Positions 1-25,165 of a stretch of DNA of 34,246 bases are shown piece after piece; position 1 is the first letter of the stretch, and each line of letters opens with the position of its first letter. The notes below the pieces were generated by a model. That model saw only the letters and a list, made by a program, of their open reading frames with translations. It was not told where the DNA came from and made no database searches. The position numbers and the translations under genes are program-made. Location of the stretch: positions 1 to 34,246 of the forward strand of contig NW_021831741.1 of assembly GCF_006345805.1 (NCBI RefSeq), in the 5' to 3' direction. This stretch comes from Octopus sinensis (lineage: Eukaryota).

Positions 1-184
1 CAAAACTAGGGTTTAGAAGATTCAGAGATAGCGCACAAGAGACGAGATGGTACAGATATGGAGGAGTATGGGGGATTTAAAATATGTGGATAAAGAAGTG
101 CCAGGAGATCCAAATTTGATGGAAATAAGAAGTTGAACCTGACAAAGGATGACAACAGCTATGGGCGTAGTCAAATTGAATGCA

Positions 185-556
185 ACAATCAAGTCAAAAC
201 TATAAACATAGGGAGAAACACTCAGAAAACTGTGCCTCTTTTAATATTAATATCATCTAAAATCTAACAAGAGTGAGAAAAAGAATGACTATATGGATGG
301 TAAATGTTGTTCAAACAATTTAATAATTGTATATTATATATAGTTACAAACAGGGATTTGTGAGATCAAGTCACACAGGGAACTCATATTTAATTCCTAT
401 CTTTATATTTTATGTCAACACCAATGTTTTGTTTAAATGTAAACAGATGTTCACCGTTCAATACTAAATTTAATATTTAATCAACGTTAATGATCATTAT
501 ACTTATACTCTTAGAGATTTGATTTTTAATCCTTTTAATTTATAACAATGTTATTC
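185..556 (+). repeat. Segmental duplication block A, copy 1 (paralogue ~2980-3341)
   Basis: About 18 mismatches over ~340 bp counted by eye; the last ~90 bp are identical. Confidence 0.95.
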
Positions 557-852
557 AGTGGTTTGTTGCCAGTTCCGCCTGACTGGTTCCATGTACCGGG
601 GGAAAGTAAAATGCACCATCTGAACGTGGTCAATGCCAGCCCCAAGCTCAACTGGCTCCTGTGTCGGTGGCACGTAAAAAGCACCCACCACACTCTCGGA
701 GTGGTTGGCATTAGGAATGGCATACATATATGGAAACCTTGCCAGATCACAGTGGAGCCTGGCGCTGCCTACTGCCTTGCCAGTGAAATCGTCCGACCCA
801 TGCTACTATAAAAACGGACGTTAAACGATGATGATGATGATGGTGATGATGA
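553..852 (+). mobile_element. SINE-like repeat (RTE-tail family) with (GAT)n tail
   Basis: Shares core and tail with 1338-1727 and 12650-13059. Confidence 0.75.
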
Positions 853-1104
853 GTTCCGTGACCAAATGACAAAATTAACTCTATTGTGTCTTCTAATTTG
901 AACATTATTACCAACAGTGCTATCCTCAATGGTTATTCCATAAACTTTCAATAATATCGATATCTTTAATAGAACTATTATACAGTTAATCTTTCAATCG
1001 TAAAATCGGAATGTAACCTGTTTTCAGTTATTCTTTGAAGCACAATATGGCCAGGGGAAGTAAAACTTATAGAAATGAATTGGCAACTGTTATTTTATAC
1101 TCAC

Positions 1105-1161
1105 CAATTTCCTCAGATGCAACCTCTGTTTGTACACACTTGTCTTCAGACTTTGGAGACT
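1105..1161 (-). CDS. Linker micro-exon copy 1 (57 nt, phase 1-1)
   Basis: Acceptor tatttatttcag, donor G|gtgagt; open frame (E)[18 protein letters not shown]. Confidence 0.7.
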
Positions 1162-2275
1162 CTGAAATAAATATTTCCAAGTTTTAGAATTAATAATAGA
1201 ATTTCTTTATCGTTATTTTAAATAAACTCTTTCTTGTTGTGAGACATTCAATTCCTTTGAGTCAAGTAAAACCAAAAACCAGAAATCACAAATCAGAATC
1301 AAAACAAGATCGAAATCAAAATGGAAATTGTAATTATGGCCGATGCCAGTGCCGCCTGACTGACACCTGTGCCGTTGGCACGTAATAATTACCATTCAAG
1401 CGTGGTTTGTTACCAGTTCCGCCTGACTGGTTCCCTGTGCCGGTGGCACATAAAAAGCACCACCCAAACGTGGTCAATGCCAGCTCCCACCTCAACTGGC
1501 TCCTGTGTCGGTGGCACGTACAAAGCACCCACCACACTCTCGGAGTGGTTGGCGTTAGGAATGGCATACATATGTGGAAACCTTGCCAGATCACATTGGA
1601 GACTGGTGGCGCATCCTACTGCCTTGCCAGTGAAATCGTCCGACCCATGCTACTATAAAAACGGACGTTAAAAGATGATGATGATGAGGAGGAGGAGGAG
1701 AAGGAGGAAGAGGAGGAGGAGGAGGAGTTCCGTGACCAAATGACAAAATTAGCTCTATTGTGTCTTCTAATTTGAACATTATTACCAACAGCATTAACCT
1801 GAACGGGTATTTCATAAACTCACAGTAAATCGATATCTTTAATTCAATTATTATACAGATAATCGTTCAATTGGAAAATAGGAATGGAAGCTGTTTTCAG
1901 TTATTCTTTCAAGCACAATATACTCGCGGGAAGAAAACCTTACTGAAATATATTGGGAACTGTTATTTTATACTCACCAATTGCCTGAGATGCAGCCCCT
2001 AATTCCTGACATGTAGCCTCTTTTTTTACACACCTGTCCTCAAACTTTGGAGCCTCTGAAATAAATATTTCCAAGTTTTACATTTAATAATAAACTTTCT
2101 TTATCTTTATTTTTATTAAACTCTATCTTGTTATTGTGAGTCATTCAATTCCTGTCGTTACTGGTCAACTGTTGACCATTATGGTTTTGGTAAATATTTA
2201 TGTACTTTCTACAGTGGTCCCATGTAATAGCTCAATATGTCCACAATAAAATAGACTAACATTCCTAAATCCACC

Positions 2276-2315
<40 letters not shown>

Positions 2316-5300
2316 AAGAACACATTAAATATTCTAACAATGTACCAATTATCTCATTTAATTAACACTTGATAACAGTTTTCTCTTAGCTTTGTCTTTC
2401 TCTTTTTGTAACTGTGCCAAATCTATGGCATGGCACAGGCCTCTCATCACTAGAATTCACTAATCAACATTCCTCTCTAATTAAGTAAAACTGAGGCCAT
2501 AAAGATGTCCTTTATGTGCATACCCTCCACCCCGCACACAATCTGTCCCCTAAAATTCATCTACACAAGCCAAATTCCATACACCCTTTCCCACCAATAT
2601 CCCTAAGAAGATATAAAATTTAAGGTGAGGGTACATGATGTTCCTATGACAAAATAAGTTTACATTTCATACATACAAATGTAAGAGAGTTAATGAATTA
2701 TAGCTTATTAATTATCATGATAATTAGGTATATATGTAATACAATGACACTGTGCTTGACGGTGCAATACTATATATCAATATAGATTGTATATAATCTG
2801 AGTAAAGAACATATCACCTTCACTACAATAAATATGATTGTGTTTCAGCACAGCTAATATTATGGTAGTTCCATGAGCAAACGAAGAAAGATATAACCAA
2901 GTCCACTGCCAAGTACTAATGATTAATTCATTTCCTGGTCAAATAACAATGACTAACTTCCATTAAATAATTTGAACACAACAATCAAGACCAAAGGGTG
3001 AAACACTCAGAAAACTGTGCCTCTTTTAACATTAATATCATCTAAAATCCAACAAGTGTGAGAAAAAGAATGACTATATGGATGGTAAAAGTTGTTCAAA
3101 CAATGTAATAAGTGAATATTATATATAGTTACAATCAAGGATGTGTGTGTTCAAGTCACACAGGGAACTCATATATAATTCATATCTTTATATTTTATGT
3201 CAACACCAATATTTTGTTTAAATGCAAACAGATGTTCACCGTCCAATACTAAATTTAATATTTAATCAACGTTAATGATCATTATACTTATACTCTTAGA
3301 GATTTGATTTTTAATCCTTTTAATTTATAACAAAGTTATTCTGACCTGAGACATTCAGGGTACGTACCTAAACAACATATCATGACAGACATCTGGTTAC
3401 ATAACAACAACAACAATAACCTATCAGAAAACTTAGGCAAGACCTTAGTAGCAAAAGAAACAAAAGCTTTCTCGTTAACTCACCTGTTTACAAATAAACA
3501 ACAAAATGTTTTAGTTCTCTGTCCTAAAAGACATCATTAACTCTATTGTGTCTTCTTATCTATTTTACCAACCACGTTAACCTGGATTTTATGAAATTTG
3601 AGTGGAATATCTAATAGAATCATTTTACACCTAATCTTACAAATAGAAATTAAGAACGGAACTTGTTCTCGATCAGCCTGACAAGCAAAATCACTCAGGC
3701 GAAGATAAATGCTATAGAAATCTATAAAGTACTGTTGTGGAGGCGCAACGGCCCACGGTTGTAGGATCGCGGTTTCGATTCCCAGACCGGACTTTGTGAG
3801 TGTTTATTGAGTGAAAACTCCTAAAGTTCCACAAGTCTCTGGCCGGGGGGTTGTAGCGATCCCTACTGTTCACTTTCTCCACAACATTATCTCACTCTTT
3901 CTTCTGTTGGCCTGCTCGCTTAGCCAGCGGGGTGGCACCACTTGAAGGCGAAGCGCATTGTAACCAGCGATGTGTAGCAACATCTGATAGCCTGGTCGGT
4001 CACAGTGATAACGGTGATAAGGTACTGTTAATTTATAGAAATCTATAAGGTACTTTTAATTTATACTCACTAACTGCCCCTGCCAACATCTTGGCTTCCT
4101 TCTCTTTAAAATTTGGACTCCCTGAGATATGTGTTTTCAAGTTTTATACTTTATAGAAAAATCTTAATAATCTATATTATTGTGAGCCATTCCTATCATA
4201 AATGAACAACCGGTGACCATTATGGTTTTGGAAGACAGATTCAACGGTGTTACCATTTAATAGGTCAATATTTAGGTGCACAACAAAATAACCTTCTAAC
4301 CTTCTTAACTCTTAAATCTCTGATCTTCTTAAATCTCCGCTGCCTATTAAGACATCCTACATAATCTAACAATGACCAACTTGGTTGACATTAGAATGAA
4401 GCAGAAGATAGGAAAATGTTGGTTTGGGAAGTCTAGAGGTGAGAGAACTATGCCATATCATAGATCTGGCACAGATATAAGAAACGAAAGCCAAAACGGA
4501 GAGATTAACAGTGATATCAATGGAAAATTAAATGAGTAGTTGTGTGTTCGAATCTGATATTTCAAAAGCTGAATCGAAGTTCCGGCAGCAGAATTGGGTA
4601 TTATCACCCTTACAAGACAGAACAAAATACCCATCCGATAAAAGTAATTTAATGATCAATATTCTAATACAGAGTTAATATTCAATTTTGTTTTATTTAC
4701 TTTCTAGGGTATATATTTGAAGTTGAGACCTTCATTGTATATACCGCAAGAGATGATATCTCATATCAAGCAATTATTTGAGATCTTTATGTATTTCCGG
4801 AGGACAACTTTATAAAATATCCATGTCGTTTTTTACATGTTGCCAGTATTTACACCTACACAGAACAACCGATTTAACAGTCAAACTTTCTAATGTTGGT
4901 TCTCAAACTCTCAGCTGAGATTTTATGATTAAATATCTTACTTCAGCAAAGCTCGAAATGATGTTCTTGGGAATATCTTTGTCTTTAATCATCATCTTCC
5001 CTAGATACTGATAAATCATTAATCAACTTTGATGACTCACAATCAATTATTAGAAATTGGTGTTTACTGATATAAAAACGGATGTACTGATATTTCAGTG
5101 AGTTACTAGTAATATTGCTGTATCATTCATTAGTCTTATGTTGCAGCATGATTCTTTAGTCTTATGTTGCGGCATGATTGATTAGTCTTGTGCAGGACCC
5201 TCTTGAAATGTGACAAGTCTTCTATTTGGATAAAGACAATGTTTTGTGGATGTAGTGTGAGATACACTATCACAGAGAAATGACACCTGGAACATCTTTC

Positions 5301-6116
5301 AACATTAATCTGCCAGATTATGGCAGATCTGGGTCTACACGACAATTCTGAAGCACATTAAATACCATATATACATATTATATATCATAAAGTCAATGAG
5401 ACAAACAGACAGATTATCAAATAGTTTTCTTACCAAATTCTCTCACACCCCTTATTCGCTGTTGACAAGTGGGGCATGATTCCCACTTAATTCTGACATA
5501 ACAATCACGACATAGGGCTATATGTTCACAGGGCTTGAATTCGGAAGAGGCATACATCACTTGACAATATGTACATCTGTAGAACAAAATAATAAAGATT
5601 ACATTGTGTACCTGTTCAGAGTAGAGAATATTACGAGACATTACAATGAAGAGTAAGACTACATTAGAAAGAGATTTCTTTTAACAATTACATTCAAACA
5701 GATTTGTGTGTGTATGAACAGAGCACACATGCAAATGCATATATATATTTAATTATACACATATTGATAAATATATAATTGACTGTGACACATGTCTAAA
5801 ATCGCAAAAACACAATGGGATACATATATTGAAGAAATATACTTCAATTCTAGCATAGACTCCATTTCTTCTGAATAAACACATGAATGAACACAAGTTC
5901 ATTTGTGTAATTACACTTTCTTATATGTGTATATAACAAATACTTTATTGCATCTAATCTATTTAACAAGCGTTCTGTACTTTGATATTTGATTTCAAAT
6001 TTTATAGATAGGCAGAGAGAACACAATTGCCATGGCTTTCTTTATAGATACACTATGTAACAAAACAAGTCATAGTTCTAAAATAGAACAATGCTTTGAA
6101 AATCATTTTTAATACA

Positions 6117-13254: not shown

Positions 13255-13745
13255 GAGAGAGAGAGAGAGAGAGAGAGATAGACAGACAGACAGATAGAAG
13301 ATAGATAGATAGATAGATAAATATACTAGCAACACTGTCTCGCACGACCTTTGCTTCCCAACAAAATGGTTCTAGGATCAACTTCATTGAATGTAATCCT
13401 TTGATAAGCATTTTTTGTTATAGTTTTTGTGTGCTAACATGTATGAATGTATGTGTTGTGTGTCTGAGTGTGTGTGTGTGTTGTGTGTATGTGTGTGTGT
13501 GTGAGTGTGTTTTTGTCTTGACATCTGTGTGATAGTTGTAAATGAGTGCCACTGTCATATAAGCAGGGTCTCTTATTTCCAACATTCTGCGGGAACATGT
13601 CTAGTTCTTGGCAATGTTAGCTTCCTTGAAAAGAAGCGGAGAGGGTTGGCGATATGGAGAGCATCCAGCTGCAGAAAATCTGCCTCAATAAAATCTATCT
13701 GAGCCAAGCAAGCATGATGATGTTGATGATCTGTGTGTGTGCTTG

Positions 13746-14204: not shown

Positions 14205-17200
14205 TGTGTAGTGGTTCAGCAAAGAGGCTGAAAGGATAAGTGATATGCTTAAAATAATAAAATTACTGGGATGATTACAGTTGACCACAAATTCAAGGTG
14301 ATGCCCCAGCATGGCCGCAGTCAAATGCCTGAAACAATATATATATATGATTGATTGATTGATTGATTCTAGTTTCAGCTCATGAGCTGTGACCATGCTG
14401 GGGCACCGCCATTTGGTGTTGCTACATGGTTTTACTTCACGAAAGCTTTTTAGCAACTGCCATTTGGTGCATGAGAGAGTTCGATGCAGCTGCCCTCATC
14501 TGCACCTCCTGCCGTGAAGTTGGTTCACCTGGGATACCTGACAGGAAGAGATCCAGTTTCATTTTAAAGACATCTGCATCCACCCCATGCAGGTCTCTTA
14601 GGTTCTTCGGGAGGATATTGAAGAGCTGTGGGCCTCGGAAGCCCAGGCTATCACAGTATCTTGTCCTACATCTTGATGGCAAATTTGGAGTCCTAGGCAC
14701 CACGCAGTGGCGCCCAGTTCTTGCATTTGTGTAACTCTCGATGCCAAAGTTTGGGACAAGTCCCTCCAGGATCTTCCAGATGTATATTATGGCATATCTT
14801 TCCCGCCTACGCTCCAAGGAATAGAGTTTTAATCTCTTTAGTCTTTCCCAGTAGCTTATATTCTGCTGCATAGAGGCTACCTTCTTCGTGTAGCTACGTT
14901 GGATCGCCTCAAGTTCTGTGATCAACTTGACACTAGATGGTGACCATAACTGAGAGCAATAGTCAAAGTGGCTTAGGACAAGTGTCCTCCAGAGGACCAT
15001 CATGGTTTCTTGTTCTCTTGTTCTAAAAGTTCTGAAAATCCATCCGGCCAGTCGTCTACATTTCATTGCCAATTTAGCAACATGTACACGAAAGGTTGCG
15101 TCATCACTCATGTAAATACCCAGGTCACGCACTGATTGTGCCTCTGGGATTGCAATTCCTCCGGGTCCAGTGTATTCATTGGGTATTGCATTTAGTTTTG
15201 CATGCTGATAGTATAAAGCTTGAAACTTTTCAGCATTGAACTGCATGCTATTCTTTTCAGCCCACTTGTATATTTTGTCCAGCTCACATTGCAGGCGTTT
15301 AGTGTCCTCAGGGTTCTGTATTGCCTGTGAAACTTTTGTATCATCTGCATAACTTGTGATCGTGGCTCTCTGCGTGGCTGAGGGCATGTCTGAGAGGGCC
15401 ATTATGAACAGTAGTGGTCCCAAGACAGTGCCCTGCGGAACACCGCTCACTATTTGCGTGTTAATGGAATTGGCTACTACCACCTGACTTCTATCTTTCA
15501 GAAAGTCATGAAGCCATTCTCCCAGTTTTCCAACTATGTTGAGATCACGCAGTTTGTGACATATCATTCCATGATCGACTTTATCAAAGGCCTTTGCAAA
15601 GTCGAGATATATCACTTCCACATTTGAGTGGTTGAGCAGTCGTTTCAGCACCCAGTCATAGTGTTGTAGGAGCTGAGTTAAACAGCTTCTCCCTGGTCGG
15701 AAACCATGTTGGGTGTCGGGCAGCAAGTCATTTTCTTCAAGGAAGGTGATCAGTTTCTTTATGACTATTCGTTCCATGACCTTGCTGATGTGTGAGGTCA
15801 GAGAGATAGGTCTGTAGTTCTTGGCCTCCGCTCTGCTACCTCCTTTATGAATAGGGCATATTTTACCTTCCTTCAGTTTTCTTGGAAGTTTGCCAGCTGC
15901 AAGGAAGCTCTGAAAGAGGAACTGCAGTGGTCTTGCTAGGACTCTCTTACATACTTTTAGGAGGATTGCCGGGAATCCATCGGGGCCAGTAACTGAGTCT
16001 GTTTTCATTTCATCTATAGCCTTTATTACATCGTCTTCCTTTATATCGATGTAATCTATCGTCGCCGCCTCTGATTTTATATCTGCAGTGGTAAAGAAGT
16101 CAGTTGGATTGGCGATTTGGAAATGCCCAAGGGGTGGAGTGAAAACACTCTTGAATTGCTCATTCAGTATTTCACTTACACTCATTGGTTTTCCTGTGAG
16201 TGTGCCATCCTTTTCAAGGAGTGGCCCTATCCTACAGTGCACTGTAGCTGTTTCTTTGGCATACCTGTAGAAAGCTCTGAGGTTAGATTTTATGTTGTCT
16301 ATAGCCCAGGCTTCTTTGTCTGCTCTTTCCTTTTCATGGGAGAGTTGCAGACATTTTTCAATTTCCAAAAGTTTTATTTTCAGGCGGGACTTTTCACTGC
16401 TTTCAATTTGTTTGTTTAGGCGATTTGAAATGTTTGTACGCCGTCTCATTAAAATTTTCCTCTCTCTGGGGATTTTGTTCTTGTGTACAGTGGCCTTTCT
16501 CTCTGGGACACATTTGTAGCATATGGCTTGCATTACAGACATGAATTGTTGAAGTTTCACGTCGATGTCTGGCGAGGAGGGAATTCAGGCCAGTTTTGTT
16601 TGAGGATCTCTTTCTCAATTTGTTTCCAGTTTGCCTTATGGTAGTTCAAGCTGGAAAGATTCTGAGGGTTTCTTGTAGGCTGCATGTCCGTGCTCTCTTT
16701 TGGCCCGTACATGGTCAGCTCTACCATGTTGTGATCCGAGAGTAGTGTCGGTGTCACTTTCACATTATGGATGAGATCCATATTATTTGTGAAGCAGAGA
16801 TCCAGTGTGTTACCTTCCCTGGTTGGTTGGAGTATTACTTGCTCCATGTACAGGGTGTTGATGAGGTTCAGGAGGGACCTCGCCTGTCCTCGTTCACATC
16901 TTGTCATTCCTGGGAGAGAAAGACCCTCGGGCCATTTGACATTGGGTAGATTGAAGTCTCCCATAAGAAGTACACTTATGTGTTGTTCTAATGTGATTAG
17001 AACTTCTATTTTTATAAGGCAGTCTTCAAACTTGCCTACATGACTTGGGGGCATCTGGAGGGCGATATGTAGCACACACAACTACCTCAAGTTGCCTTAT
17101 ATGTACAATTAGTGTGTCACACACCGAGTTTGAATATGACAAAAGGACCTGGGGTGTGAGGTCCTCACGGATGTACATAGCAACTCCTCCATGACTCCTT

Positions 17201-19669
17201 TCTTTTCTGTCGGTCCGTAGTACAACATACTGTGGTATGTGTAATTCCGCATCTGCTATGTCCGGTTTCAGGTGCGTTTCCGTAAGTGCTATGCATAAGG
17301 CTTGATTGCATGGAAAGTTTGCCACAGGTGAGGATCGAACTCATGACCTTCAGATTACTCGGTTGTTAGAGCAGGATTATGAGACTGACGCGCTGCCTAC
17401 TGCGCTATCTGTCTCTTTTATGTATACCTGATGTCTGTTATATTGTCTCTTTTATATATACCTGATGTCTGTTATATTTTGGTTCATCTCATAATGACCT
17501 TGTTTCATTTGACCATTAAAGGTATTATTATCAGTGGTGGAGGTCAGTTGGACTGTCAACACCGCTAATATCATCATCAACATGATCAATATACAATTCC
17601 TCCACAAACACAAGGGTTTTGTAGTACATGTGATAAATCTATTCCCATTATTTTACTGGTACCTTGATAATATTTATATTATACAGATCAATATAATACT
17701 GGAGAGTGTATATAATATGTATTTATTAACTAACCTTGGACAGCATCGCACACACCACTTTATACCATCGCCTGAAAGTAATGGATGAGGAAAGAAAAAC
17801 ATGAAAAAAACAAACATCACACAGCTTGAGATATAGTTATTAGTCATTAAAGAAAACAAATGCAATTAGGTCACAATAACTTAATTACAGCAATTATTAC
17901 ACCACATACTCACACACACATATATTATTCAATACACACTCTAACAGTAGAACATAATATAACACCCCTGAGTAAACCCAGAAATGTAAAGACAGGAAAA
18001 AATGCTAAGAATTCTCACAGCTTATATAAACATGACATTTAGGAAGGAAAGAAGGGCTACAGGTAATATATGAACCCCAGTACATGACTGGTATTGTTTT
18101 TATCAACCTTGCAAAGATGGAAGACGTTGACCTTGGCAGGATTTGAACTCTTAACGTAAAGAGTCGTAAATAAATAACACAATTATTTTCTCTAAAAGTA
18201 ATAAAGAAACAGAACAGGAGGAAAATAGAAGAAGACAGTTTATAAAGGAACCCTGGGTATTACTGGTATAGATTATATTGACCCAGAGTGATAGTAAATA
18301 TTCTGGTAGGATTTGAACATGGAACATAAAAGAGACAGATGTAAATACTGTAAGGGGATGATTCTGTATTTAGCCCAGGGTCAGAGTAAATAGGGAAACT
18401 ACAAGAGAGAGAGAGAGAGAGAGGGGGAAGAAAGAGAGAGAGAAAAAAGTAGTTCTAAATGGGATGAAAGGAAGAAGAGAGAGAATTTGAACCTGTGACG
18501 TTGAGGAAATGGAGAACGAGATGAAGTAAAGTGTCCAGTCAGGCAACAACAATAACAATGATGATGATTAATTAATAAAGTAGATTACAGTGCGAAAGAG
18601 AGAAGAAAGACAATGACCCCATGGTGGGATTATGACATGAATGACTGAATGAAAAAGAAACAAACATTATTGAAAACATAAAAGAAACAGATTTGGATAT
18701 TCCAGATCCAATGGGGACTTACCTCCGAACTGCCCAATGCAGTGGTGTGTCTCCATCGTTGTTCACCACATTGGCATCGATGCCATTGTGACCCAACAAC
18801 AGCTCGACAGTGTGCAAGTGTCCCCGCGAACAGGCCCAGTGCAGCGGTGTTTCACCATTATTAGACCGTGCATTGACCTGAAAAAGAAAAGAATAAAAAC
18901 ATTAAAAATGGTGTCTGAAAGGGGAGTCGGGTGGTGAAGAATTAAAAGAAAAACTCACAGAAAATGAGAAGAGAAGGAATGAAATTAATTAAACAGGTGG
19001 AATGATTGGGGTGGGGAGTAGGTAATAGAGATTTCTATTGTATATACACACACGCGTATACACAAATACATATGTACATATAAATATATTTATACACACA
19101 CACACAAACACACGCATATAGGATGAATAACTCAATAAATAAACACATAGTGCAGCAAAATGTGTGTGTGTGTGTGTGTGTGTGTTCATAGTTACATTTA
19201 TTCTATTATTCTTTCATTTGTTTCAGTCATGTGGATGTGGCCATGCTGGAGCACTGTCGTTAGTCGAGCAAATCAACCCCAATAAGCCTAGTACTTATTT
19301 TATTAGTTTCTTTTGCAGAAACGCTAGTTTACGGGGACGTAAACACATCAGCATCGGTTGTCAAGCGATGATGGGGACAAACACAGACACACAAACACAC
19401 GTACGTACACACAGACACACATAACACACACACATATATATATATATATATATGTACACACACACACACACACACAATATATATATATATATATATATAC
19501 ATATATAGGACGGGCTTCTTCCAGTTTCCGTCTACCAAATCCACTCACAAGGCTTAGGTCGGCCCGAGGCTATAGTACAAGACACTTGCCCAGGTGCCAC
19601 TAAGAGGGACTGAACCCGGAACCATGTTGTTTGTAAGCAATCTACTTACCACACAGCCATTCCTGTGCC

Positions 19670-20286: not shown

Positions 20287-21333
20287 CATACTATATAGGA
20301 TGAAGTTTTTTTTACAGAAAAATATTCCATCAAAAAATGTGGCAGCATACTAAAATAACTTTACAGTTAAATTATAAACAACTTATAAATAAGGGTTAAA
20401 GAAAAGTATTTCAAAGCCAATTTTCTGATAACAGACTTTTAAATCGTCAATTTCCACATATTATTTACTCGCTACAGAGAAAAAACACTAAGAACTGAAA
20501 ACGGCGAAAGCCGGTCAATAGAATGTTTTTTAAAAAGTTCGTTATTTCTATATTGAATCAATTTCGGAATTAATCTCATAATAGATTCTTTCGTCTTCAG
20601 TAGAACATACGAAAGGATATGAATAAGATACTTACCTCACTGCCCCGAGATAGTAAGATCTCCACAGCATGAGGTCGATCGCTGAGACTAAAAGATAGAA
20701 ACATTGACTAATTTACATGAAATATGAAAATATTTTGGCTTTGAGACGAAACAGTATCGTCATCATCATCACCATCATCATCACCTGCACTATTATCATC
20801 AATATCATGTTCATCAACATCATTACCATCAGCATCATTACCACCACCTCTATCATTGACACAATCATCATCATCATCATCATTATCATCATCGCCATCA
20901 TCACCATCATCATCATCGCCTTCATCATCATCACCATCTTCATCACCTGCACTATTATCATCAATATCATGTTCATCAACATCATTACCATCATCATCAT
21001 TACCACCACCTCTATCATTGACACAATCATCATCATCATCATCATTATCATCATCGCCATCATCACCATCATCATCATCGCCTTCATCATCATCACCATC
21101 TTCATCACCTGCACTATTATCATCAATATCATGTTCATCAACATCATTACCATCATCATCATTGCCACCACCTCCATCATTGACATAATCATCATCATCA
21201 TCATCATCGCCATCATCACCCTCATTGCCAACACCATCATCATCATCATCGTTCATAGCCACCATCATCATCATCACCATCATCATCAACAGAGTCATCA
21301 TCATCACCGTCTGCGTCATCATCATCATCATCG

Positions 21334-21366
<33 letters not shown>

Positions 21367-22138
21367 CCATCATCATCAACAGAGTCATCATCATCAACAG
21401 AGTCATCATCATCACCGTCTGCGTCATCATCATCATCGTCATCATCATCATCATCAGCTCCATCATCAACAGCAAGATCGACCTCATCAATATCATCATC
21501 ATCATTATCACCATCATCATAATCACTATCATCATTATCATCATGATCAACATCACCATCATCATTTTCATCATAGTCATCATCATCCTCATCACCATCA
21601 TCATGAGCAGCAGCAGCATCATTATCATCTGCATCAACATATTAATCATAATCATCATCTTCATCATAATCACCATCAAAATCATCATTATCCTCCTCCC
21701 CCTCCTTCTCATCATCATCGTCCTCATCATTATTATCATCATCATCATCATCATCATCATCATCGGGATTGTTATGTTTGAATAATGACTAATGAATTGG
21801 ATCGATGACTAAAGAGAAGCTTGTTGTTGTTGTTGTTGTTGTTTGCTAGTCTGCTGTTGTGCTGTTGTGCTGCTGTCCCACTACTATGGCATCTTTGGAT
21901 ATTGAACCTGTGACTGCAATTGCAACAAATTTACAAACAAAAACACACCTGCAGATTTTACTTGATTCTCAACTTACCTCCACACAGCCCAATGTAAGGC
22001 TGTATTACCAAACAAGGAGTCTTTTGCTCCCACCCCTCTTCCTGCTTCTAGCAATAATTCGAGTATTCTTCTATCGGCGCCCAATTGAGAGGCCAATATT
22101 AAAGGAGTTTTTCCAAATATATCAATAGGTTTATTTAT
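1105..22138 (-). CDS. Multi-exon ankyrin-repeat + C3HC4 RING protein gene (MIB2-like C-terminal architecture, putative E3 ubiquitin ligase); 3' end runs off the window and the 5' end is uncertain
   Basis: Ten exons with GT-AG boundaries and matching phases (0-2, 2-0, 0-2, 2-0, 0-0, 0-2, 2-1, 1-1, 1-1, 1-1) give one uninterrupted frame: [16 protein letters not shown]...[44 protein letters not shown]...[44 protein letters not shown]...-WSWKLSL...KTFIPPA-CTYC...CPTC. Family assignment is from known ankyrin and RING consensus motifs. Confidence 0.88.
1338..1727 (+). mobile_element. SINE-like repeat (RTE-tail family) with (GAT)n(GAG)n tail
   Basis: Paralogue of 553-852 inside the duplicated block; has extra upstream sequence. 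Confidence 0.75.
1394..2152 (+). repeat. Duplication block B, copy 2
   Basis: Colinear with 553-1258. Confidence 0.93.
1978..2055 (-). CDS. Linker micro-exon copy 2 (78 nt, phase 1-1)
   Basis: Acceptor tatttatttcag, donor G|gtgagt; open frame [25 protein letters not shown]; 21 nt longer than copy 1 with frame preserved. Confidence 0.68.
2980..3341 (+). repeat. Segmental duplication block A, copy 2
   Basis: Direct match to 185-556. Confidence 0.95.
3737..4033 (+). mobile_element. tRNA-derived SINE with ~24-bp target-site duplication
   Basis: Head gtggaggcgcaacggccc...ggtttcgattcc (B-box-like); flanked by tatagaaatctataaagtactgtt (3713-3736) and tatagaaatctataaggtactttt (4034-4057). Confidence 0.85.
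4071..4121 (-). CDS. Linker micro-exon copy 3 (51 nt, phase 1-1)
   Basis: Acceptor atatctcag, donor A|gtgagt; open frame (G)[16 protein letters not shown]; flanks homologous to those of the other two copies. Confidence 0.62.
5434..5576 (-). CDS. RING finger exon (143 nt, phase 2-1; unspliced read-through stops at 5417)
   Basis: Acceptor ttgttctacag; C-x2-C-x11-C-x-H-x3-C-x2-C-x8-C-x2-C (C3HC4, MIB/XIAP-type spacing); donor TTTG|gtaaga at 5433. Confidence 0.9.
6882..8019 (+). mobile_element. Decayed Tc1/mariner transposase, DD37D (maT-type), with right terminal repeat remnant
   Basis: N-terminal HTH-like region from ATG 6882, then KNFDQDQ, MVLGVVS.EG.VMPP.FFP, RPYVFQ*DSA and WPPNSSDLN(P)LD; 37 residues between catalytic D2 and D3 after one frameshift. 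Ends at tgtcctcaaatatcttacacacc followed by (TA)n; left TIR not seen. Confidence 0.88.
8455..8630 (-). CDS. Degenerate ankyrin/linker exon (176 nt, phase 0-2)
   Basis: Acceptor aacctatgtag, donor GC|gtaagt; open frame [58 protein letters not shown]. Its phases bridge the flanking exons exactly. Confidence 0.88.
9606..9690 (+). mobile_element. Possible second GIY-YIG relic (Penelope-like)
   Basis: Frame reads [20 protein letters not shown]; upstream 9130-9500 is coding-like but unassignable. Confidence 0.3.
9929..10138 (-). CDS. Ankyrin exon (210 nt, phase 0-0)
   Basis: Acceptor tttttacctccacaaag, donor CAG|gtaagt; encodes [41 protein letters not shown]. Confidence 0.93.
10545..10965. repeat. 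Long imperfect inverted repeat (foldback/MITE-like), arms ~190 bp, spacer ~30 bp
   Basis: Core 10578-10924: gtttcgacccatcttgcatcggt...gtgcagatgcatctcatcgggtg...aagatacctc is mirrored on the opposite strand; roughly 80% complementary by eye. Confidence 0.92.
11175..12615 (+). mobile_element. Decayed RTE-clade LINE, reverse transcriptase region
   Basis: Broken frames give RGIKLL...[48 protein letters not shown] and ADDLV; many stops and frameshifts. Confidence 0.88.
12650..13059 (+). mobile_element. 3' region of an RTE-associated/SINE-like repeat with internal ~40-bp tggcacc/gtgcc tandem units and a (GAT)n tail
   Basis: Core ggtggttggcattaggaagg...gttaaa(t/c)gatgatgat is shared with 553-852 and 1338-1727; lies directly downstream of the RTE ORF. 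Confidence 0.7.
13215..13320. repeat. Compound microsatellite (TA)n(GA)n(GACA)n(GATA)n
   Basis: Seen directly. Confidence 0.95.
13640..13730 (+). mobile_element. Short diverged copy of the RTE-tail repeat family
   Basis: ggttggcgatatggagagcatccagctgcagaaa followed by a gatgat tail; resembles the family core. Confidence 0.5.
13745..13925. repeat. (TA)n/(TACA)n microsatellite
   Basis: Seen directly. Confidence 0.95.
13965..14337 (+). mobile_element. tRNA-derived SINE with internal (TG)n and a CR1-like tail
   Basis: Degenerate tRNA-like head; ends ccccagcatggccgcagtcaaatgcctgaaac; homologous to 19218-19670 and 30368-30689. Confidence 0.75.
14348..17319 (-). mobile_element. CR1-clade LINE: near-complete ORF2 (APE endonuclease + reverse transcriptase) with two frameshifts, 3' UTR and (ATCA)n tail
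   Basis: APE motifs TET, GGV, YRPP, GDFN, LDL and SDH in ORFs 17026-17325 and 16557-17081. RT motifs [45 protein letters not shown] and YADD in the 707-aa ORF 14437-16560. Frameshifts lie near 17045 and 16580; the tail is (TGAT)n on + at 14348-14368. Confidence 0.95.
17320..17414 (-). tRNA. Elongator tRNA-Met(CAT)-derived copy with a 22-nt insertion at the canonical 37/38 intron site; probable pseudogene
   Basis: Minus strand TAGCGCAGTAGGCAGCGCGTCAGTCTCATA[ATCCTGCTCTAACAACCGAGTA]ATCTGAAGGTCATGAGTTCGATCCTCACCTGTGGCA closely matches the eukaryotic elongator Met tRNA. D arm, anticodon arm and A/B boxes are intact; the acceptor stem is disrupted (only ACAG/CTGT can pair, out of register) and the T-stem has one mismatch. 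Confidence 0.8.
17410..17477. repeat. 34-bp tandem duplication (2 copies) abutting the tRNA 5' end
   Basis: tgtctcttttat(g/a)tatacctgatgtctgttatat at 17410-17443 and 17444-17477. Confidence 0.9.
17735..17771 (-). CDS. Ankyrin micro-exon (37 nt, phase 2-0)
   Basis: Acceptor ctttcag, donor AAG|gttagt; encodes (R)[12 protein letters not shown] and supplies the second ankyrin helix plus the phase needed to join 10138. Confidence 0.82.
18075..18350 (+). repeat. Two diverged fragments of the interspersed repeat also found at 33194 and 33841
   Basis: accccagtacatgactggta...ggatttgaactc at 18075-18155 and gacccagagtg...ggatttgaacat at 18280-18325. Confidence 0.55.
18723..18877 (-). CDS. Ankyrin exon (155 nt, phase 0-2)
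   Basis: Acceptor ttctttttcag, donor AG|gtaagt; encodes [51 protein letters not shown]. Confidence 0.93.
19218..19670 (-). mobile_element. Full-length tRNA-derived SINE (same family)
   Basis: Minus-strand head ggcacaggaatggctgtgtggtaagt...ggttccgggttcagtcc, central (TA)/(TG) microsatellite, tail ccagcatggccacatccacatgactgaaac. Confidence 0.85.
19968..20295. repeat. Interrupted (TA)n microsatellite field
   Basis: Seen directly. Other simple repeats lie at 2276-2312, 6121-6148, 8175-8222, 9837-9877, 27345-27430, 28290-28420 and 32468-32575. Confidence 0.95.
20636..20687 (-). CDS. Small ankyrin exon (52 nt, phase 2-0)
   Basis: Acceptor ttctatcttttag, donor GAG|gtaagt; encodes (S)[17 protein letters not shown], completing the ankyrin repeat between the flanking exons in frame. 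Confidence 0.88.
20757..21763. repeat. ~1 kb degenerate (CAT)n array with a 162-bp higher-order repeat
   Basis: The variant string catcacctgcactattatcatcaatatc recurs at 20779, 20941 and 21103; a second variant (caacagagtcatcatcatcaccgtctgcg) recurs near 21285 and 21395. Confidence 0.95.
21978..22138 (-). CDS. Ankyrin exon (161 nt, phase 0-2)
   Basis: Acceptor ttcattacag, donor AG|gtaagt; encodes [12 protein letters not shown]...LLLEAG and [10 protein letters not shown]. Confidence 0.92.
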
Positions 22139-22179
22139 CTGTAATGAAGAAAGTGAGGACATGTGAAATAGAGAAATTC

Positions 22180-22809
22180 CATTCTCTCTCTCTCTCTCTC
22201 TTCTTCTTGTCTCTCACTCTCTTTCTCGTCTTTTCCTCTTTCTCTCTTCTTCTCTCTCTATATCCCTTTCATTTCTTTCTACTCTTTCTTTTCTCACTTT
22301 TCTCTCTCTTTCCCTTCTCCTTCTCTGTCTTCTTTCTCTTTCTCTCTTTGGGTCTCTTTTACTCTCTTCTCTTTCTTTTCTCTCTTTTCCCATTTTCTTT
22401 CCTCTCTTTTCTCTCTCATTCCTTCATCTCTCTTTTTCTTTTTCTCTTATCGTTCTCTTTCTCATTTCTCAATTTCTCTATTTCTCTCTCCGTATCTCTC
22501 TCTCTCTCTTTCATTTCTTCTCTTTCTATCTTACATTCTTCTCTTTCCCGTTTCTTATATCTTTCTTTCTCCCTTTCTCTTTCTCCCTCTTTTTCCCTCT
22601 CTCTCATGCTTTTCTCTCTTTTTCCATTTTACTTTTCTCTGTTTCTCTCTTTTTCTTTCTCTTTCTCTCTTTTTCCATTTCTCTTTCTTTATCTCTCTCT
22701 CTATTACCTTTTTTCTTTCTTTCTCTCTCTGTCTCCTTCACTTTTCCTTTTCTCTCTTTCACCCAACCTTTTTCTTTTTCGTCTCTCTTTCTCTTTTACA
22801 TTTATCACT

Positions 22810-22847
<38 letters not shown>

Positions 22848-24978
22848 TTCTCGTTGCCTTTTCTCATCACCCTCTTTCTCTTTTACTGTCTCTCTTTCTT
22901 GATGTCCTTTCTTTTCCCTTTTCTCTCTCTCTCTCCCTTCCTCTCTCTCTTCATTCATTCTCTCACATTCTTTCTTTTCTACTCTCTCTCTATGTCTCTA
23001 CACTTTGTTTCTTCTTTCTTCTCTTTCCTCCTCTCTCTCTCTCTTTCTTCTTTCTTCTCTCTCACTATTTCCCACTCTATTTTTTTCCTATTTCTCCTTT
23101 CCATCTCTGTCCTCTCTCTTTTTCTCTTCCTCTTTCTTCCTCTCTTTCGCTCGTTTTCTTTGTCTGTCACTATCTTCACATTCCTCATCTTCTCTCTTTC
23201 TTCTCTATTCTGTTCTCTCTTTCTTTTCGCTCTCTCTCTTTTCTCCTTCTTTCTCGCTTTTCCCTCGTTTTTTTTCCTTCTTTTTCCCTTTCGTTTTTTT
23301 TTTTCCTTTTTCCCTTGTCCTCTCTCTCACTCTTTCATTTCTCTCTTTCTTCCTCTCGTTTCTTTTTCTCTCTCTTTCTTTTCTCGCTCTCTCACTTTTT
23401 TCTCCTTCTTTCTCCCTCTCGTTTTCTTTTTATCCTTCTTCCTCTCTCTCACTCTTTCTTCCTCTCGTTTCTTTTCTCTCTCTCTTTCTTTTCTCGCTCT
23501 CTCGCTTTTTTCTCCTTCTTTCTCCCTCTCGTTTTCTTTTTATCCTTCTTCCTCTCTCTCACTTTTTCATTTCCCTCTTTCCCCCTCTCGTTTTCTTTTT
23601 ATCCTTTTTCCTCTCTCTCACTCTTTCATTTCTCTCTTCCTTCCTCTCGTTTCTTTTTCTCTCTCTCTTTCTTTTCTCGCTGCCTCGCTTATTTCTCCTT
23701 CTTTCTCCCTCTCGTTTTGTTTTTATCCTCTTCCTCTCTCTCACTCTTCATTTCTCTCTTTCCCCTCTCGTTTCTTTCTCTCTCTTTCTTTTCTCGCTCT
23801 CTCGCTTTTCTCCTTCTCCCTCCCTCTCTTTTCTTTTATCTTCTTCAGCTCTCTCACTCTTCATTTCTCTCTTCCTTCCTCTCGTTTCTTTCTCTCTCTA
23901 TTTCTTTCTTGCTCTCTTACTTTTTTCTCCTCTTTCTCCCTCTCGTTTTCTTTTTATCCTTCTCCTCTCTCTCACTCTTCATTTCTTCTTTCTTCCTCTA
24001 GTTTCTTTTTCTCTCCTCTTCTTGCTCTCTTACTTTTTTCTCCTTTTTTCCCTCTCGTTCTCTTATCCTTCTCCCTCTCTCTCACTCTTCATTTCTCTCT
24101 TCCTTCCTCTCGTTTCTTTTCTCTCTCTTTCTTTCTCGCTCTCTCACTTTTTTCTCCTTCTTTCCCCCTCTCGTTTCTTTTATCCTTTCCTCTCTCTCAC
24201 TCTTTCATTTTCTCTCTCCTCCTCGCGTTTCTTTCTCTCTCTCCTTTTTTCTCACTCACTCACTTTTTCTCCTTCTTTCTCCCTCTCGTTTTCTTTTATC
24301 CTTCTTCCTCTCTCTCACTCTTTCATTTCTCTCTCTCTTCCTCTCGTTTCTTTCTCTCTCTCTCCTTCTTTTCTCGCTCACTCACTTTTTTCTCTTTCTT
24401 TCTTTCTCTCGTTTTCTTTTTATTATTCTTCCTCTCTCTCACTCTTTCATTTCTCTCTTTCTTCCTCTCGTTTTCTTTTTATCCTTCTTCCTCTCTCTCA
24501 CTCTTTCATTTCTCTCTTTCTTCCTCTTGTTTCTTTTTCTCTCTCTTTTCTCGATCTCTCGCTTTTTTCTCTTTCTTTCTCCCTCTCGTTTGCATTTTAT
24601 CCTTCCTCCCCTCTCTCACTCTTTCATTTCTCACTTTCTTCCTCTCGTTTCTTTTTCTCTCTCTCTTTCTTTTCTCACTCTCTCACTTTTCTCTCCTTCT
24701 TTCTCCCTCTCGTTTGCTTTTCATCCTTCTTCCTCTCTCACACTCTTTCATTTCTCTCTTTCTTTCTCTCGTTTCTTTTTCTCTCTCCCTTTCTTTTCTC
24801 TCTCATTTTCTTTTTTCAATCTCCTTCTCTTTATCTTTTCTCTCCTTTTTCTCTCTCTCTCTTTCTCTGTTTCATTTCTCTTTTTGTCTTCTCTATAGTT
24901 CTCTCTCAATTTTCATTTTCTTTCTTCTATTTTTCTATTTCTCTCTTCATTTTTCTCTTTCTTTTTCTTTTTCTCTTC
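22180..24978. repeat. 2.8-kb polypyrimidine (CT-rich) tract with a ~110-120 bp minisatellite core (~23320-24790)
   Basis: Recurrent unit ctctctcactctttcatttctctctttcttcctctcgtttc...ctccctctcgttttctttttatccttcttc; almost no purines on +. Confidence 0.93.
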
Positions 24979-24980
24979 TA

Positions 24981-25165
24981 CTTGTTTCAGTCATGAGAGT
25001 GCGACCATGCTGGGGCTCCTCCTCGATTTTGTCTTTTATGTGTGATCCCTTTTCTGTCTAAATAACACCAACCTATAGCTCTCTTTTGCTTCAGAGCTAA
25101 GCAACAGGGATGCAAATACACCAACACCGGTTATCAATTAGCAGTTAGGGACACACTAACATAGA
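24981..25165 (-). mobile_element. 3' half of the same SINE family
   Basis: cttgtttcagtcatgagagtgcgaccatgctgggg...aaatacaccaacaccggtt on +. Confidence 0.7.

Follow-up and report, generated by a model that had tools for sequence, protein, structure and literature searches.

Spacers built of short symmetric exons are known from titin (the PEVK exons) and from collagens (54-nt exons), and the class 1-1 symmetric modules of exon shuffling (Patthy) can be inserted, duplicated or skipped without a frame shift. Tandem exon duplication was reportedly surveyed early on by Kondrashov and Koonin in 2001 and by Letunic et al. in 2002. Ivanov and Pervouchine (2022, PMC9013439) have described new cases in which such duplication gives alternative exons. 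The locus considered here is a stretch of 34,246 nt from Octopus sinensis (contig NW_021831741.1, positions 1 to 34,246, hereafter the window), which is likely to contain most of an octopus gene with ankyrin (ANK) repeats, a C-terminal RING and a Death domain, and in which three micro-exons located after the RING exon, called A, B and C, are likely to be symmetric cassette exons that provide spacer units. Tandem exon duplication giving cassette exons is a known kind of event; the octopus linker is a further case of it and not a new principle.

The three micro-exons are as follows (a slash marks the exon boundary):

4121-4071, minus strand: micro-exon A, 51 nt, phase 1-1, cag/GGAGTCC...CAGTTA/gtgagtat, 17 residues, a candidate cassette exon.
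2055-1978, minus strand: micro-exon B, 78 nt, phase 1-1, cag/AGGCTCC...CAATTG/gtgagtat, of the 26-residue module type, which starts with (K/E).
1161-1105, minus strand: micro-exon C, 57 nt, phase 1-1, cag/AGTCTCC...AAATTG/gtgagtat, 19 residues.

A, B and C are homologous to one another, lie on the same strand, and each has its own splice sites (cag/ and /gtgagta). An earlier note on this DNA had reported three paralogous exons of 51, 78 and 57 nt with an AG acceptor and a gtgagt donor, each open in the phase of the RING donor. The description of the exons is correct in every detail, and the statement about the phase also stands: phase 1, which is set by the RING donor at 5434, has no stop in A, B or C. 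Stops occur in all three exons in phase 2, and in B in phase 0.

A module profile was built from 22 modules of other paralogues and run on the six-frame translation. Its best matches in the window are exactly these three exons, all in phase 1 (13.7 bits for A and 15.2 bits for C, for a background maximum of 8.7), and the A, B and C peptides outscore all background in a six-frame translation of about 118 kb. No fourth copy was found within the window, either by a DNA search or by the six-frame scan with this profile.

The two closest loci are L001, an unplaced O. sinensis contig, and L002, which belongs to O. vulgaris (GCA_951406725.2, CATOCA020000001.1). Positions 28289-857 of the window are colinear with L002, and the mismatch rate between 5591-857 and L002 32462-37210 is 4.6%. 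Positions 5923-2482 are about 96% identical to L001 when only mismatches are counted; beyond, the array of units differs. The counterpart of B in L002 (36036-36113) is identical at 75 of 78 positions and that of C (36906-36962) at all 57, and both are annotated coding exons of P0015 and P0016. In L002, the models CAJ1099217.1 and CAJ1099218.1 splice the RING exon to B, B to C, C to Death-domain exon 1 (41126-41200) and the latter to Death-domain exon 2. The O. vulgaris models come from a pipeline which mixes Iso-Seq, RNA-seq, protein alignments and ab initio predictions (PMC10700109), and the B and C exons of this annotation are likely to have read support. From these sequence relationships it is quite likely that B and C are also spliced at the window locus.

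The copies of A in L001 (11444-11494) and L002 (33953-34003) match it at 49 of 51 positions each, and both splice sites are kept. A resembles the second module of P0010 from O. bimaculoides (KNPNFEEKQRETMAKRV), a module which is skipped in isoform P0064, and its acceptor is of the same type (acacatat[c/t]tcag) as that of the annotated exons m3 and m5 in the O. bimaculoides locus L004. A is thus a plausible cassette exon, although its use, at least some of the time, is possible rather than probable.

The RING donor of the window is genuine, as the earlier note supposed: it is spliced in the annotated homologues of O. sinensis and O. vulgaris, and to micro-exons. In L001, the isoforms X1, X2 and X3 of LOC115230672 show the arrangement RING / ARPIFEDKEVQTVEEPR / ESPVLKERDLLRVAKRLGRDWWQV / AIFSGVD...LSLDAK, with exons at 13685-13735, 18334-18405 and 18917-19117. 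X2 lacks the 17-residue module and X3 lacks the 24-residue Death-domain exon 1.

The same modules are found throughout a family of paralogues. An exhaustive search of a library of 1.84 billion proteins with P0001 gave 55 relatives. Those that have both a RING and a Death domain belong, as far as their source was looked up, to three species, O. sinensis, O. vulgaris and O. bimaculoides; the matches from Argonauta, sea star and fish consist of the Death domain alone. Across the paralogues of the three Octopus species, 0 to 6 modules of about 17 residues lie between the RING and the C-terminal Death domain. They follow the motif x-[SC]-P-K-x-E-[ED]-K-x-V-Q-T-V-x-E-x-V and are rich in E, K, Q, T, V, S and P. 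The earlier note had suggested counting linker exons in paralogous ANK-RING genes, and the range of 0-6 is the result of this count: P0007, P0013 and P0018 have no module, P0020 and P0022 have one, P0010 and P0014 two, P0009 and P0061 four to five, P0019 five plus one longer unit, and P0027 six. The module of type B is also present in P0006 (twice), P0026 (four times), P0028, P0035 and P0037. Many modules of P0027, P0039 and P0019 begin with C-P-[KR]-C, every 17 residues, which looks like a row of zinc-knuckle half-sites. The modules of the window do not have this motif, and modules with a single Cys came out disordered when modelled.

The number of modules also varies between isoforms. In O. 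bimaculoides, the annotated isoforms P0061, P0009 and P0062 have 5, 4 and 3 modules, respectively, and P0010 and P0064 have 2 and 1, the difference being one A-like module. In O. sinensis, P0070 contains two modules, P0020 only the second and P0071 only the first. The isoforms X9-X22 of one O. sinensis gene, which has four modules, include none of them, each one singly, or five of the six possible pairs; the same gene has an alternative acceptor at Death-domain exon 1. In the paralogous loci L003 (O. sinensis) and L004, each module is encoded by one exon, in the same splice frame, with cag/.../gtgagta or gtaagt as splice sites. Four module copies, spaced by about 160 nt with introns of about 110 nt, are located at 16547-17079 of L003, and two of them, counted at 51 nt, are annotated exons. 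The claim that any subset of the exons can be included or skipped is therefore supported, at the level of gene models, by annotated inclusion and skipping in many combinations in the paralogues.

The proposed explanation is that A, B and C are partial copies of Death-domain exon 1, arranged in tandem in the intron that separates this exon from the RING exon. Since these copies are symmetric (phase 1-1), any combination of them could be spliced between the RING and the Death domain without changing the frame. The modules would act as spacers which set the length and the charge of a tether between the RING, which would bind the E2, and the Death domain, which would dock the ligase on Death-domain partners. 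The net charge of the modules is about +1 for A, about +1 for B and about -4 for C. It is presumed that the length of the linker matters for function.

A downstream domain located outside the window, to which the linker would lead, had been proposed in the earlier note, and in the related loci this domain is a Death domain. The Pfam Death family (PF00531) matches P0027 (45 bits), P0018 (49 bits) and P0013 (23.8 bits) above the cut-off, and P0001 with a sub-threshold score of 15 bits. The AlphaFold2 model of P0070 shows a confident ANK region, a RING and a Death domain which forms a six-helix bundle. The two modules of this protein (residues 183-215) have a pLDDT of 27-46 and no secondary structure in the model, and the modules are thus predicted to be disordered. 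A Death domain of the same type is found at the C-terminus of P0043 (XP_052821851.1, O. bimaculoides), an adhesion-GPCR-like protein with LRR repeats and 7TM, where it is preceded by a different low-complexity linker, (STSQQ)n; in P0023, the Death domain is preceded by (PSTSQHE)n.

The micro-exons sit in tandem duplication units of about 0.9-1.2 kb, whose flanks align as well:

4231-2992, minus strand: duplication unit A, with an upstream flank, exon A, a downstream flank with a repeat insertion at about 3740-3980 (approximate extent) and a 300-nt tail at 2992-3291.
2190-1402, minus strand: duplication unit B, with an upstream flank, exon B, a downstream flank and a SINE-like insertion (SINE, short interspersed nuclear element) at 1402-1700.
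1281-207, minus strand: duplication unit C, with exon C between its upstream and downstream flanks, a SINE-like insertion (positions 558-853) and a tail (positions 207-506).

The tail of unit C (207-506) is 94% identical to that of unit A (2992-3291). Seven copies were aligned: A, B and C of the window and, from L001, three copies and Death-domain exon 1. They all share homology from the upstream intron, across the acceptor (..aacttggaaatatttatttcag), the beginning of the exon ((E)SP..) and the gtgagta donor, into the downstream intron. Their lengths (51, 78, 57, 51, 51, 48 and 72 nt) are all multiples of 3, and phase 1 is open in all of them. The units of the window match the region of Death-domain exon 1 of L001 over up to 723 nt (E = 3e-38). 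Death-domain exon 1 is itself a 1-1 exon, of 72 nt, which is skipped in isoform X3. As several paralogues (P0007, P0013, P0018) have no module at all, the units appear to be partial tandem duplicates of Death-domain exon 1, minus 21 nt of the part that codes for helix 1. What each copy preserves is the acceptor, the first 45 nt or so of the exon, the gtgagta donor and flanks of several hundred bases. C corresponds to the basic 51 nt plus 6 nt, and B has a further 21 nt, apparently an internal copy of its last 7 codons (ATCQELG / AASQAI; compare VASEEI in C).

Within the units, SINE-like insertions are found at 558-853, 1402-1700 and about 3740-3980. The first two are 89-91% identical and end with (GAT/GAG)n; no tRNA-like head was detected for these insertions by ARAGORN in positions 1-6000 of the window. 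A 68-nt sub-repeat is present at 1346-1529, with related copies at 22.3-24.6 kb in L001.

The octopus exons resemble the known tandem exon duplicates in that homologous exons are adjacent in one gene, the splice sites were copied along, some copies are unannotated, and alternative inclusion is annotated, here in relatives. They differ from the usual case in that the source is the first exon of a folded domain, whose truncated copies encode a disordered spacer, and in that their use is combinatorial (from none to several) and not one of a set. As in the titin PEVK region, the exons are short, in tandem and multiples of three, they code for low-complexity, unstructured and charged units, and their inclusion sets the length of a tether. 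On the other hand, the units number 0-6, as compared with over 100, the setting is an E3 ligase with a signalling adaptor domain and not a muscle spring, and the sequences are not related. The phase 1-1 symmetry, which Death-domain exon 1 shares, is that of the class 1-1 modules, but unlike in exon shuffling it is a part of an exon that was duplicated within one gene, and not a whole domain that moved between genes. In this case the intermediates are still visible, and they show how tandem copies of a part of a domain's first exon can come to serve as a disordered spacer.

The frame divisibility and the splice signals have to be weighed against the possibility that the copies are neutral intronic relics, in which case the RING exon would be joined directly to Death-domain exon 1 in the mRNA, and the frames and splice sites would be intact by chance in young copies. 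A number of observations speak in favor of relics and against cassette exons. The earlier note considered the exons to be under selection, and by the test which it had itself proposed, in a comparison with L002, this claim is not supported: the micro-exons differ at 5 of 186 positions, with no indel, and the non-exon sequence at 201 of 4341 (4.63%), so that exon divergence equals intron divergence (Fisher p = 0.28), in a test which has little power with only 5 substitutions in 186 nt. The changes in the micro-exons are non-synonymous in five cases out of five. When paralogous copies are compared, identity is 50-63% for the exon bodies and 47-76% for the flanks, the exon being no better conserved; for B and C, it is 81% within the exon, 76% on its upstream side and 84% on its downstream side. 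Exon A is in no annotated protein of L001 or L002, and the B and C exons of O. vulgaris, since they come from a mixed-evidence pipeline, may be without read support. Dead copies exist: the third copy of L001 (sC, 15768-15815) has caa in place of cag and has lost its AG acceptor, and two copies of L003, with bodies counted at 50 and 49 nt, are unannotated. Module-free isoforms are annotated in paralogues (P0003, P0077). Phase 1 is open after composition-preserving shuffles with a probability of 0.29 (A), 0.17 (B) and 0.24 (C), and it stays open with a probability of 0.42 (A), 0.24 (B) and 0.36 (C) when an open ancestor drifts neutrally by 0.45 substitutions per site; retention of an open frame under drift is therefore not rare, and the open frames alone are only moderately unlikely. 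However, the copies are not young, as A differs from B and C by about 45%, and yet the frame, a length divisible by three, the AG and the gtgagta were all kept. As the earlier note stated, the differences in length keep the frame despite intron indels of other sizes: the lengths are multiples of three in seven copies out of seven, and the intron indels between the window and L002 in 5 out of 22. The chance that four independent exon indels are all divisible by three is about 0.003-0.012, so that frame retention is better than chance, in an argument made after the fact. B and C are moreover annotated exons in the colinear O. vulgaris locus, and the peptides fit a motif learnt from other paralogues better than all the background. 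Relics are an unlikely explanation. Only the frame, the open reading and the splice signals have been kept, a pattern which fits a disordered spacer. In the annotated copies of the relatives, these features persist while the peptide drifts, and dead copies lie beside used ones.

It could also be that the window holds a decaying copy of a family with fast turnover, in which the micro-exons may be spliced but the product is without a functional Death domain and the linker serves no purpose at this locus. Death-domain exon 2 of L002 (44804-44981) can only be read with two frame shifts, hence in three frames, and P0016 has an out-of-frame tail at its end and no Pfam Death match. These frame shifts are either real decay or an assembly error, and the branch with the O. 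vulgaris homologue may be decaying, which would also count against functional cassette exons. Decay would be in line with the divergence of the RING exon from L002 (11 of 142 positions, or 7.7%, with 6 non-synonymous and 5 synonymous changes, for about 4.6% in the introns around it), with a LINE (long interspersed nuclear element) in an upstream intron and with the mosaic relationships of the window to its paralogues. Against it, all eight zinc ligands of the RING are present and every exon of the gene seen in the window is intact, the Death-domain exons of this locus should lie beyond the low-coordinate end of the window, and the defects of L002 may not be real. A decaying copy is quite unlikely. 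The arrangement in which exactly one of A, B and C is used per transcript, which the earlier note had also envisaged, is very improbable. Tandem exon duplicates are often mutually exclusive (PMC9013439), and P0020 and P0071 each use one of two modules, but B and C occur together in P0015, P0016 and P0037, both modules of P0070 are included, and zero, one or two are found in the isoforms of paralogues. Furthermore, all the copies are symmetric, so that no frame constraint would enforce exclusivity, and the intron between B and C is about 816 nt long, which leaves no steric block. A mutually exclusive cluster was thus rejected from the homologues, whose products hold two modules in series (P0015, P0016, P0037, P0070) or none (P0077).

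Beyond the reading of A, B and C as symmetric cassette exons, a broader proposal is more doubtful. It states that the genes form an octopod-restricted, fast-evolving family of ANK-RING-Death ligases, in which the reach and the charge of the tether would be tuned by the regulated inclusion, in different combinations, of 51-nt duplicates of Death-domain exon 1. If this were true, Death-domain signalling complexes, perhaps those of innate immunity or cell death, would be served by a graded series of ligases, to which both gene duplication (0-6 modules per paralogue) and splicing (many isoforms per gene) contribute. The natural length series of 0-6 modules offers a way to ask whether the spacing between a RING and a docking domain matters in an E3 ligase.

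The gene of the window is on the minus strand and encodes ANK repeats and a RING; its protein relatives, which all come from Octopus, are labelled 'MIB2-like' in databases. Mind bomb ligases have MIB/HERC2 and ZZ domains at the N-terminus, and at least two RINGs. The octopus proteins resemble MIB1 and MIB2 in that ankyrin repeats are followed by a RING of the zf-C3HC4_3 type near the C-terminus. A Pfam scan of P0061, P0027, P0013 and P0007 (E up to 0.01) found only Ank families and one RING, plus Death in P0027 and P0013, some of these models being possibly truncated at the N-terminus. A true Mind bomb (MIB1/MIB2) ligase was rejected on this domain content: the octopus protein has a fused Death domain instead and is MIB-like in name only. 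One report describes an action of mammalian MIB2 on the Death-domain kinase RIPK1 (PMC5912950). The RefSeq and ENA models of the three Octopus species named 'E3 ubiquitin-protein ligase MIB2-like' (for example XP_036355691-703, XP_014776758/763 and CAJ1099217.1) belong to the same gene family and have the same exon modules. Among these models, CAJ1099217.1 has exons that are almost the same as B and C; A is in no model of L001 or L002. A literature search found no published description of the octopus family or of its modular linker, the gene models themselves being public. As far as annotation is concerned, A is a candidate unannotated exon, and the family name 'MIB2-like' is misleading.

The other features of this gene in the window are:

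~22162-21983, minus strand: probable first coding exon, found by tblastn with P0007, P0022 and P0035; approximate boundaries.
~18880-18722, minus strand: ankyrin-repeat exon; approximate boundaries.
~10141-9929, minus strand: ankyrin-repeat exon, Ank 35.6 bits; approximate boundaries.
~8630-8457, minus strand: exon upstream of the RING exon, which includes KTFIPP, found by tblastn; approximate boundaries.
5575-5434, minus strand: RING exon (zf-C3HC4_3, PF13920, 35.4 bits for a cut-off of 27), which ends in phase 1 with GAATTTG/gtaaga.
5419-5417, minus strand: stop codon that is reached when the post-RING intron is retained, with the read-through ...REFGKKTI*.

The peptide of the window's own RING is absent among the matches of a word-indexed protein search, which is weak evidence, as close relatives were also missed there. 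The divergence of the RING exon suggests that the whole 3' part of the gene evolves fast, and the surface of the RING may be under relaxed or diversifying selection. The exon at 8630-8454 has 98% protein identity to P0006, which is encoded on a different O. vulgaris contig, and is only 76% identical in DNA to the colinear L002; at the RING exon and beyond, the identity of L002 to the window is about 95%. This mosaic suggests that the family is young and that segments have probably been exchanged between paralogues.

An intron of the gene contains the following element:

14437-17325, minus strand: decayed non-LTR retrotransposon (LINE).

It has a 707-aa open reading frame which matches RVT_1 (110 bits) and, in another frame, one of 174 aa which matches Exo_endo_phos_2 (43 bits). 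The region from about 20700 to 25100 consists of DNA of extremely low complexity, which results in long spurious open reading frames. A minisatellite with triplets of the ATG/ATC type, at about 20.7-21.8 kb, is followed by a C+T-rich tract of about 3 kb, in which the GC skew and the AT skew are both about -0.8. The counterpart of this low-complexity region in L002 is 76-83% identical, with many gaps.

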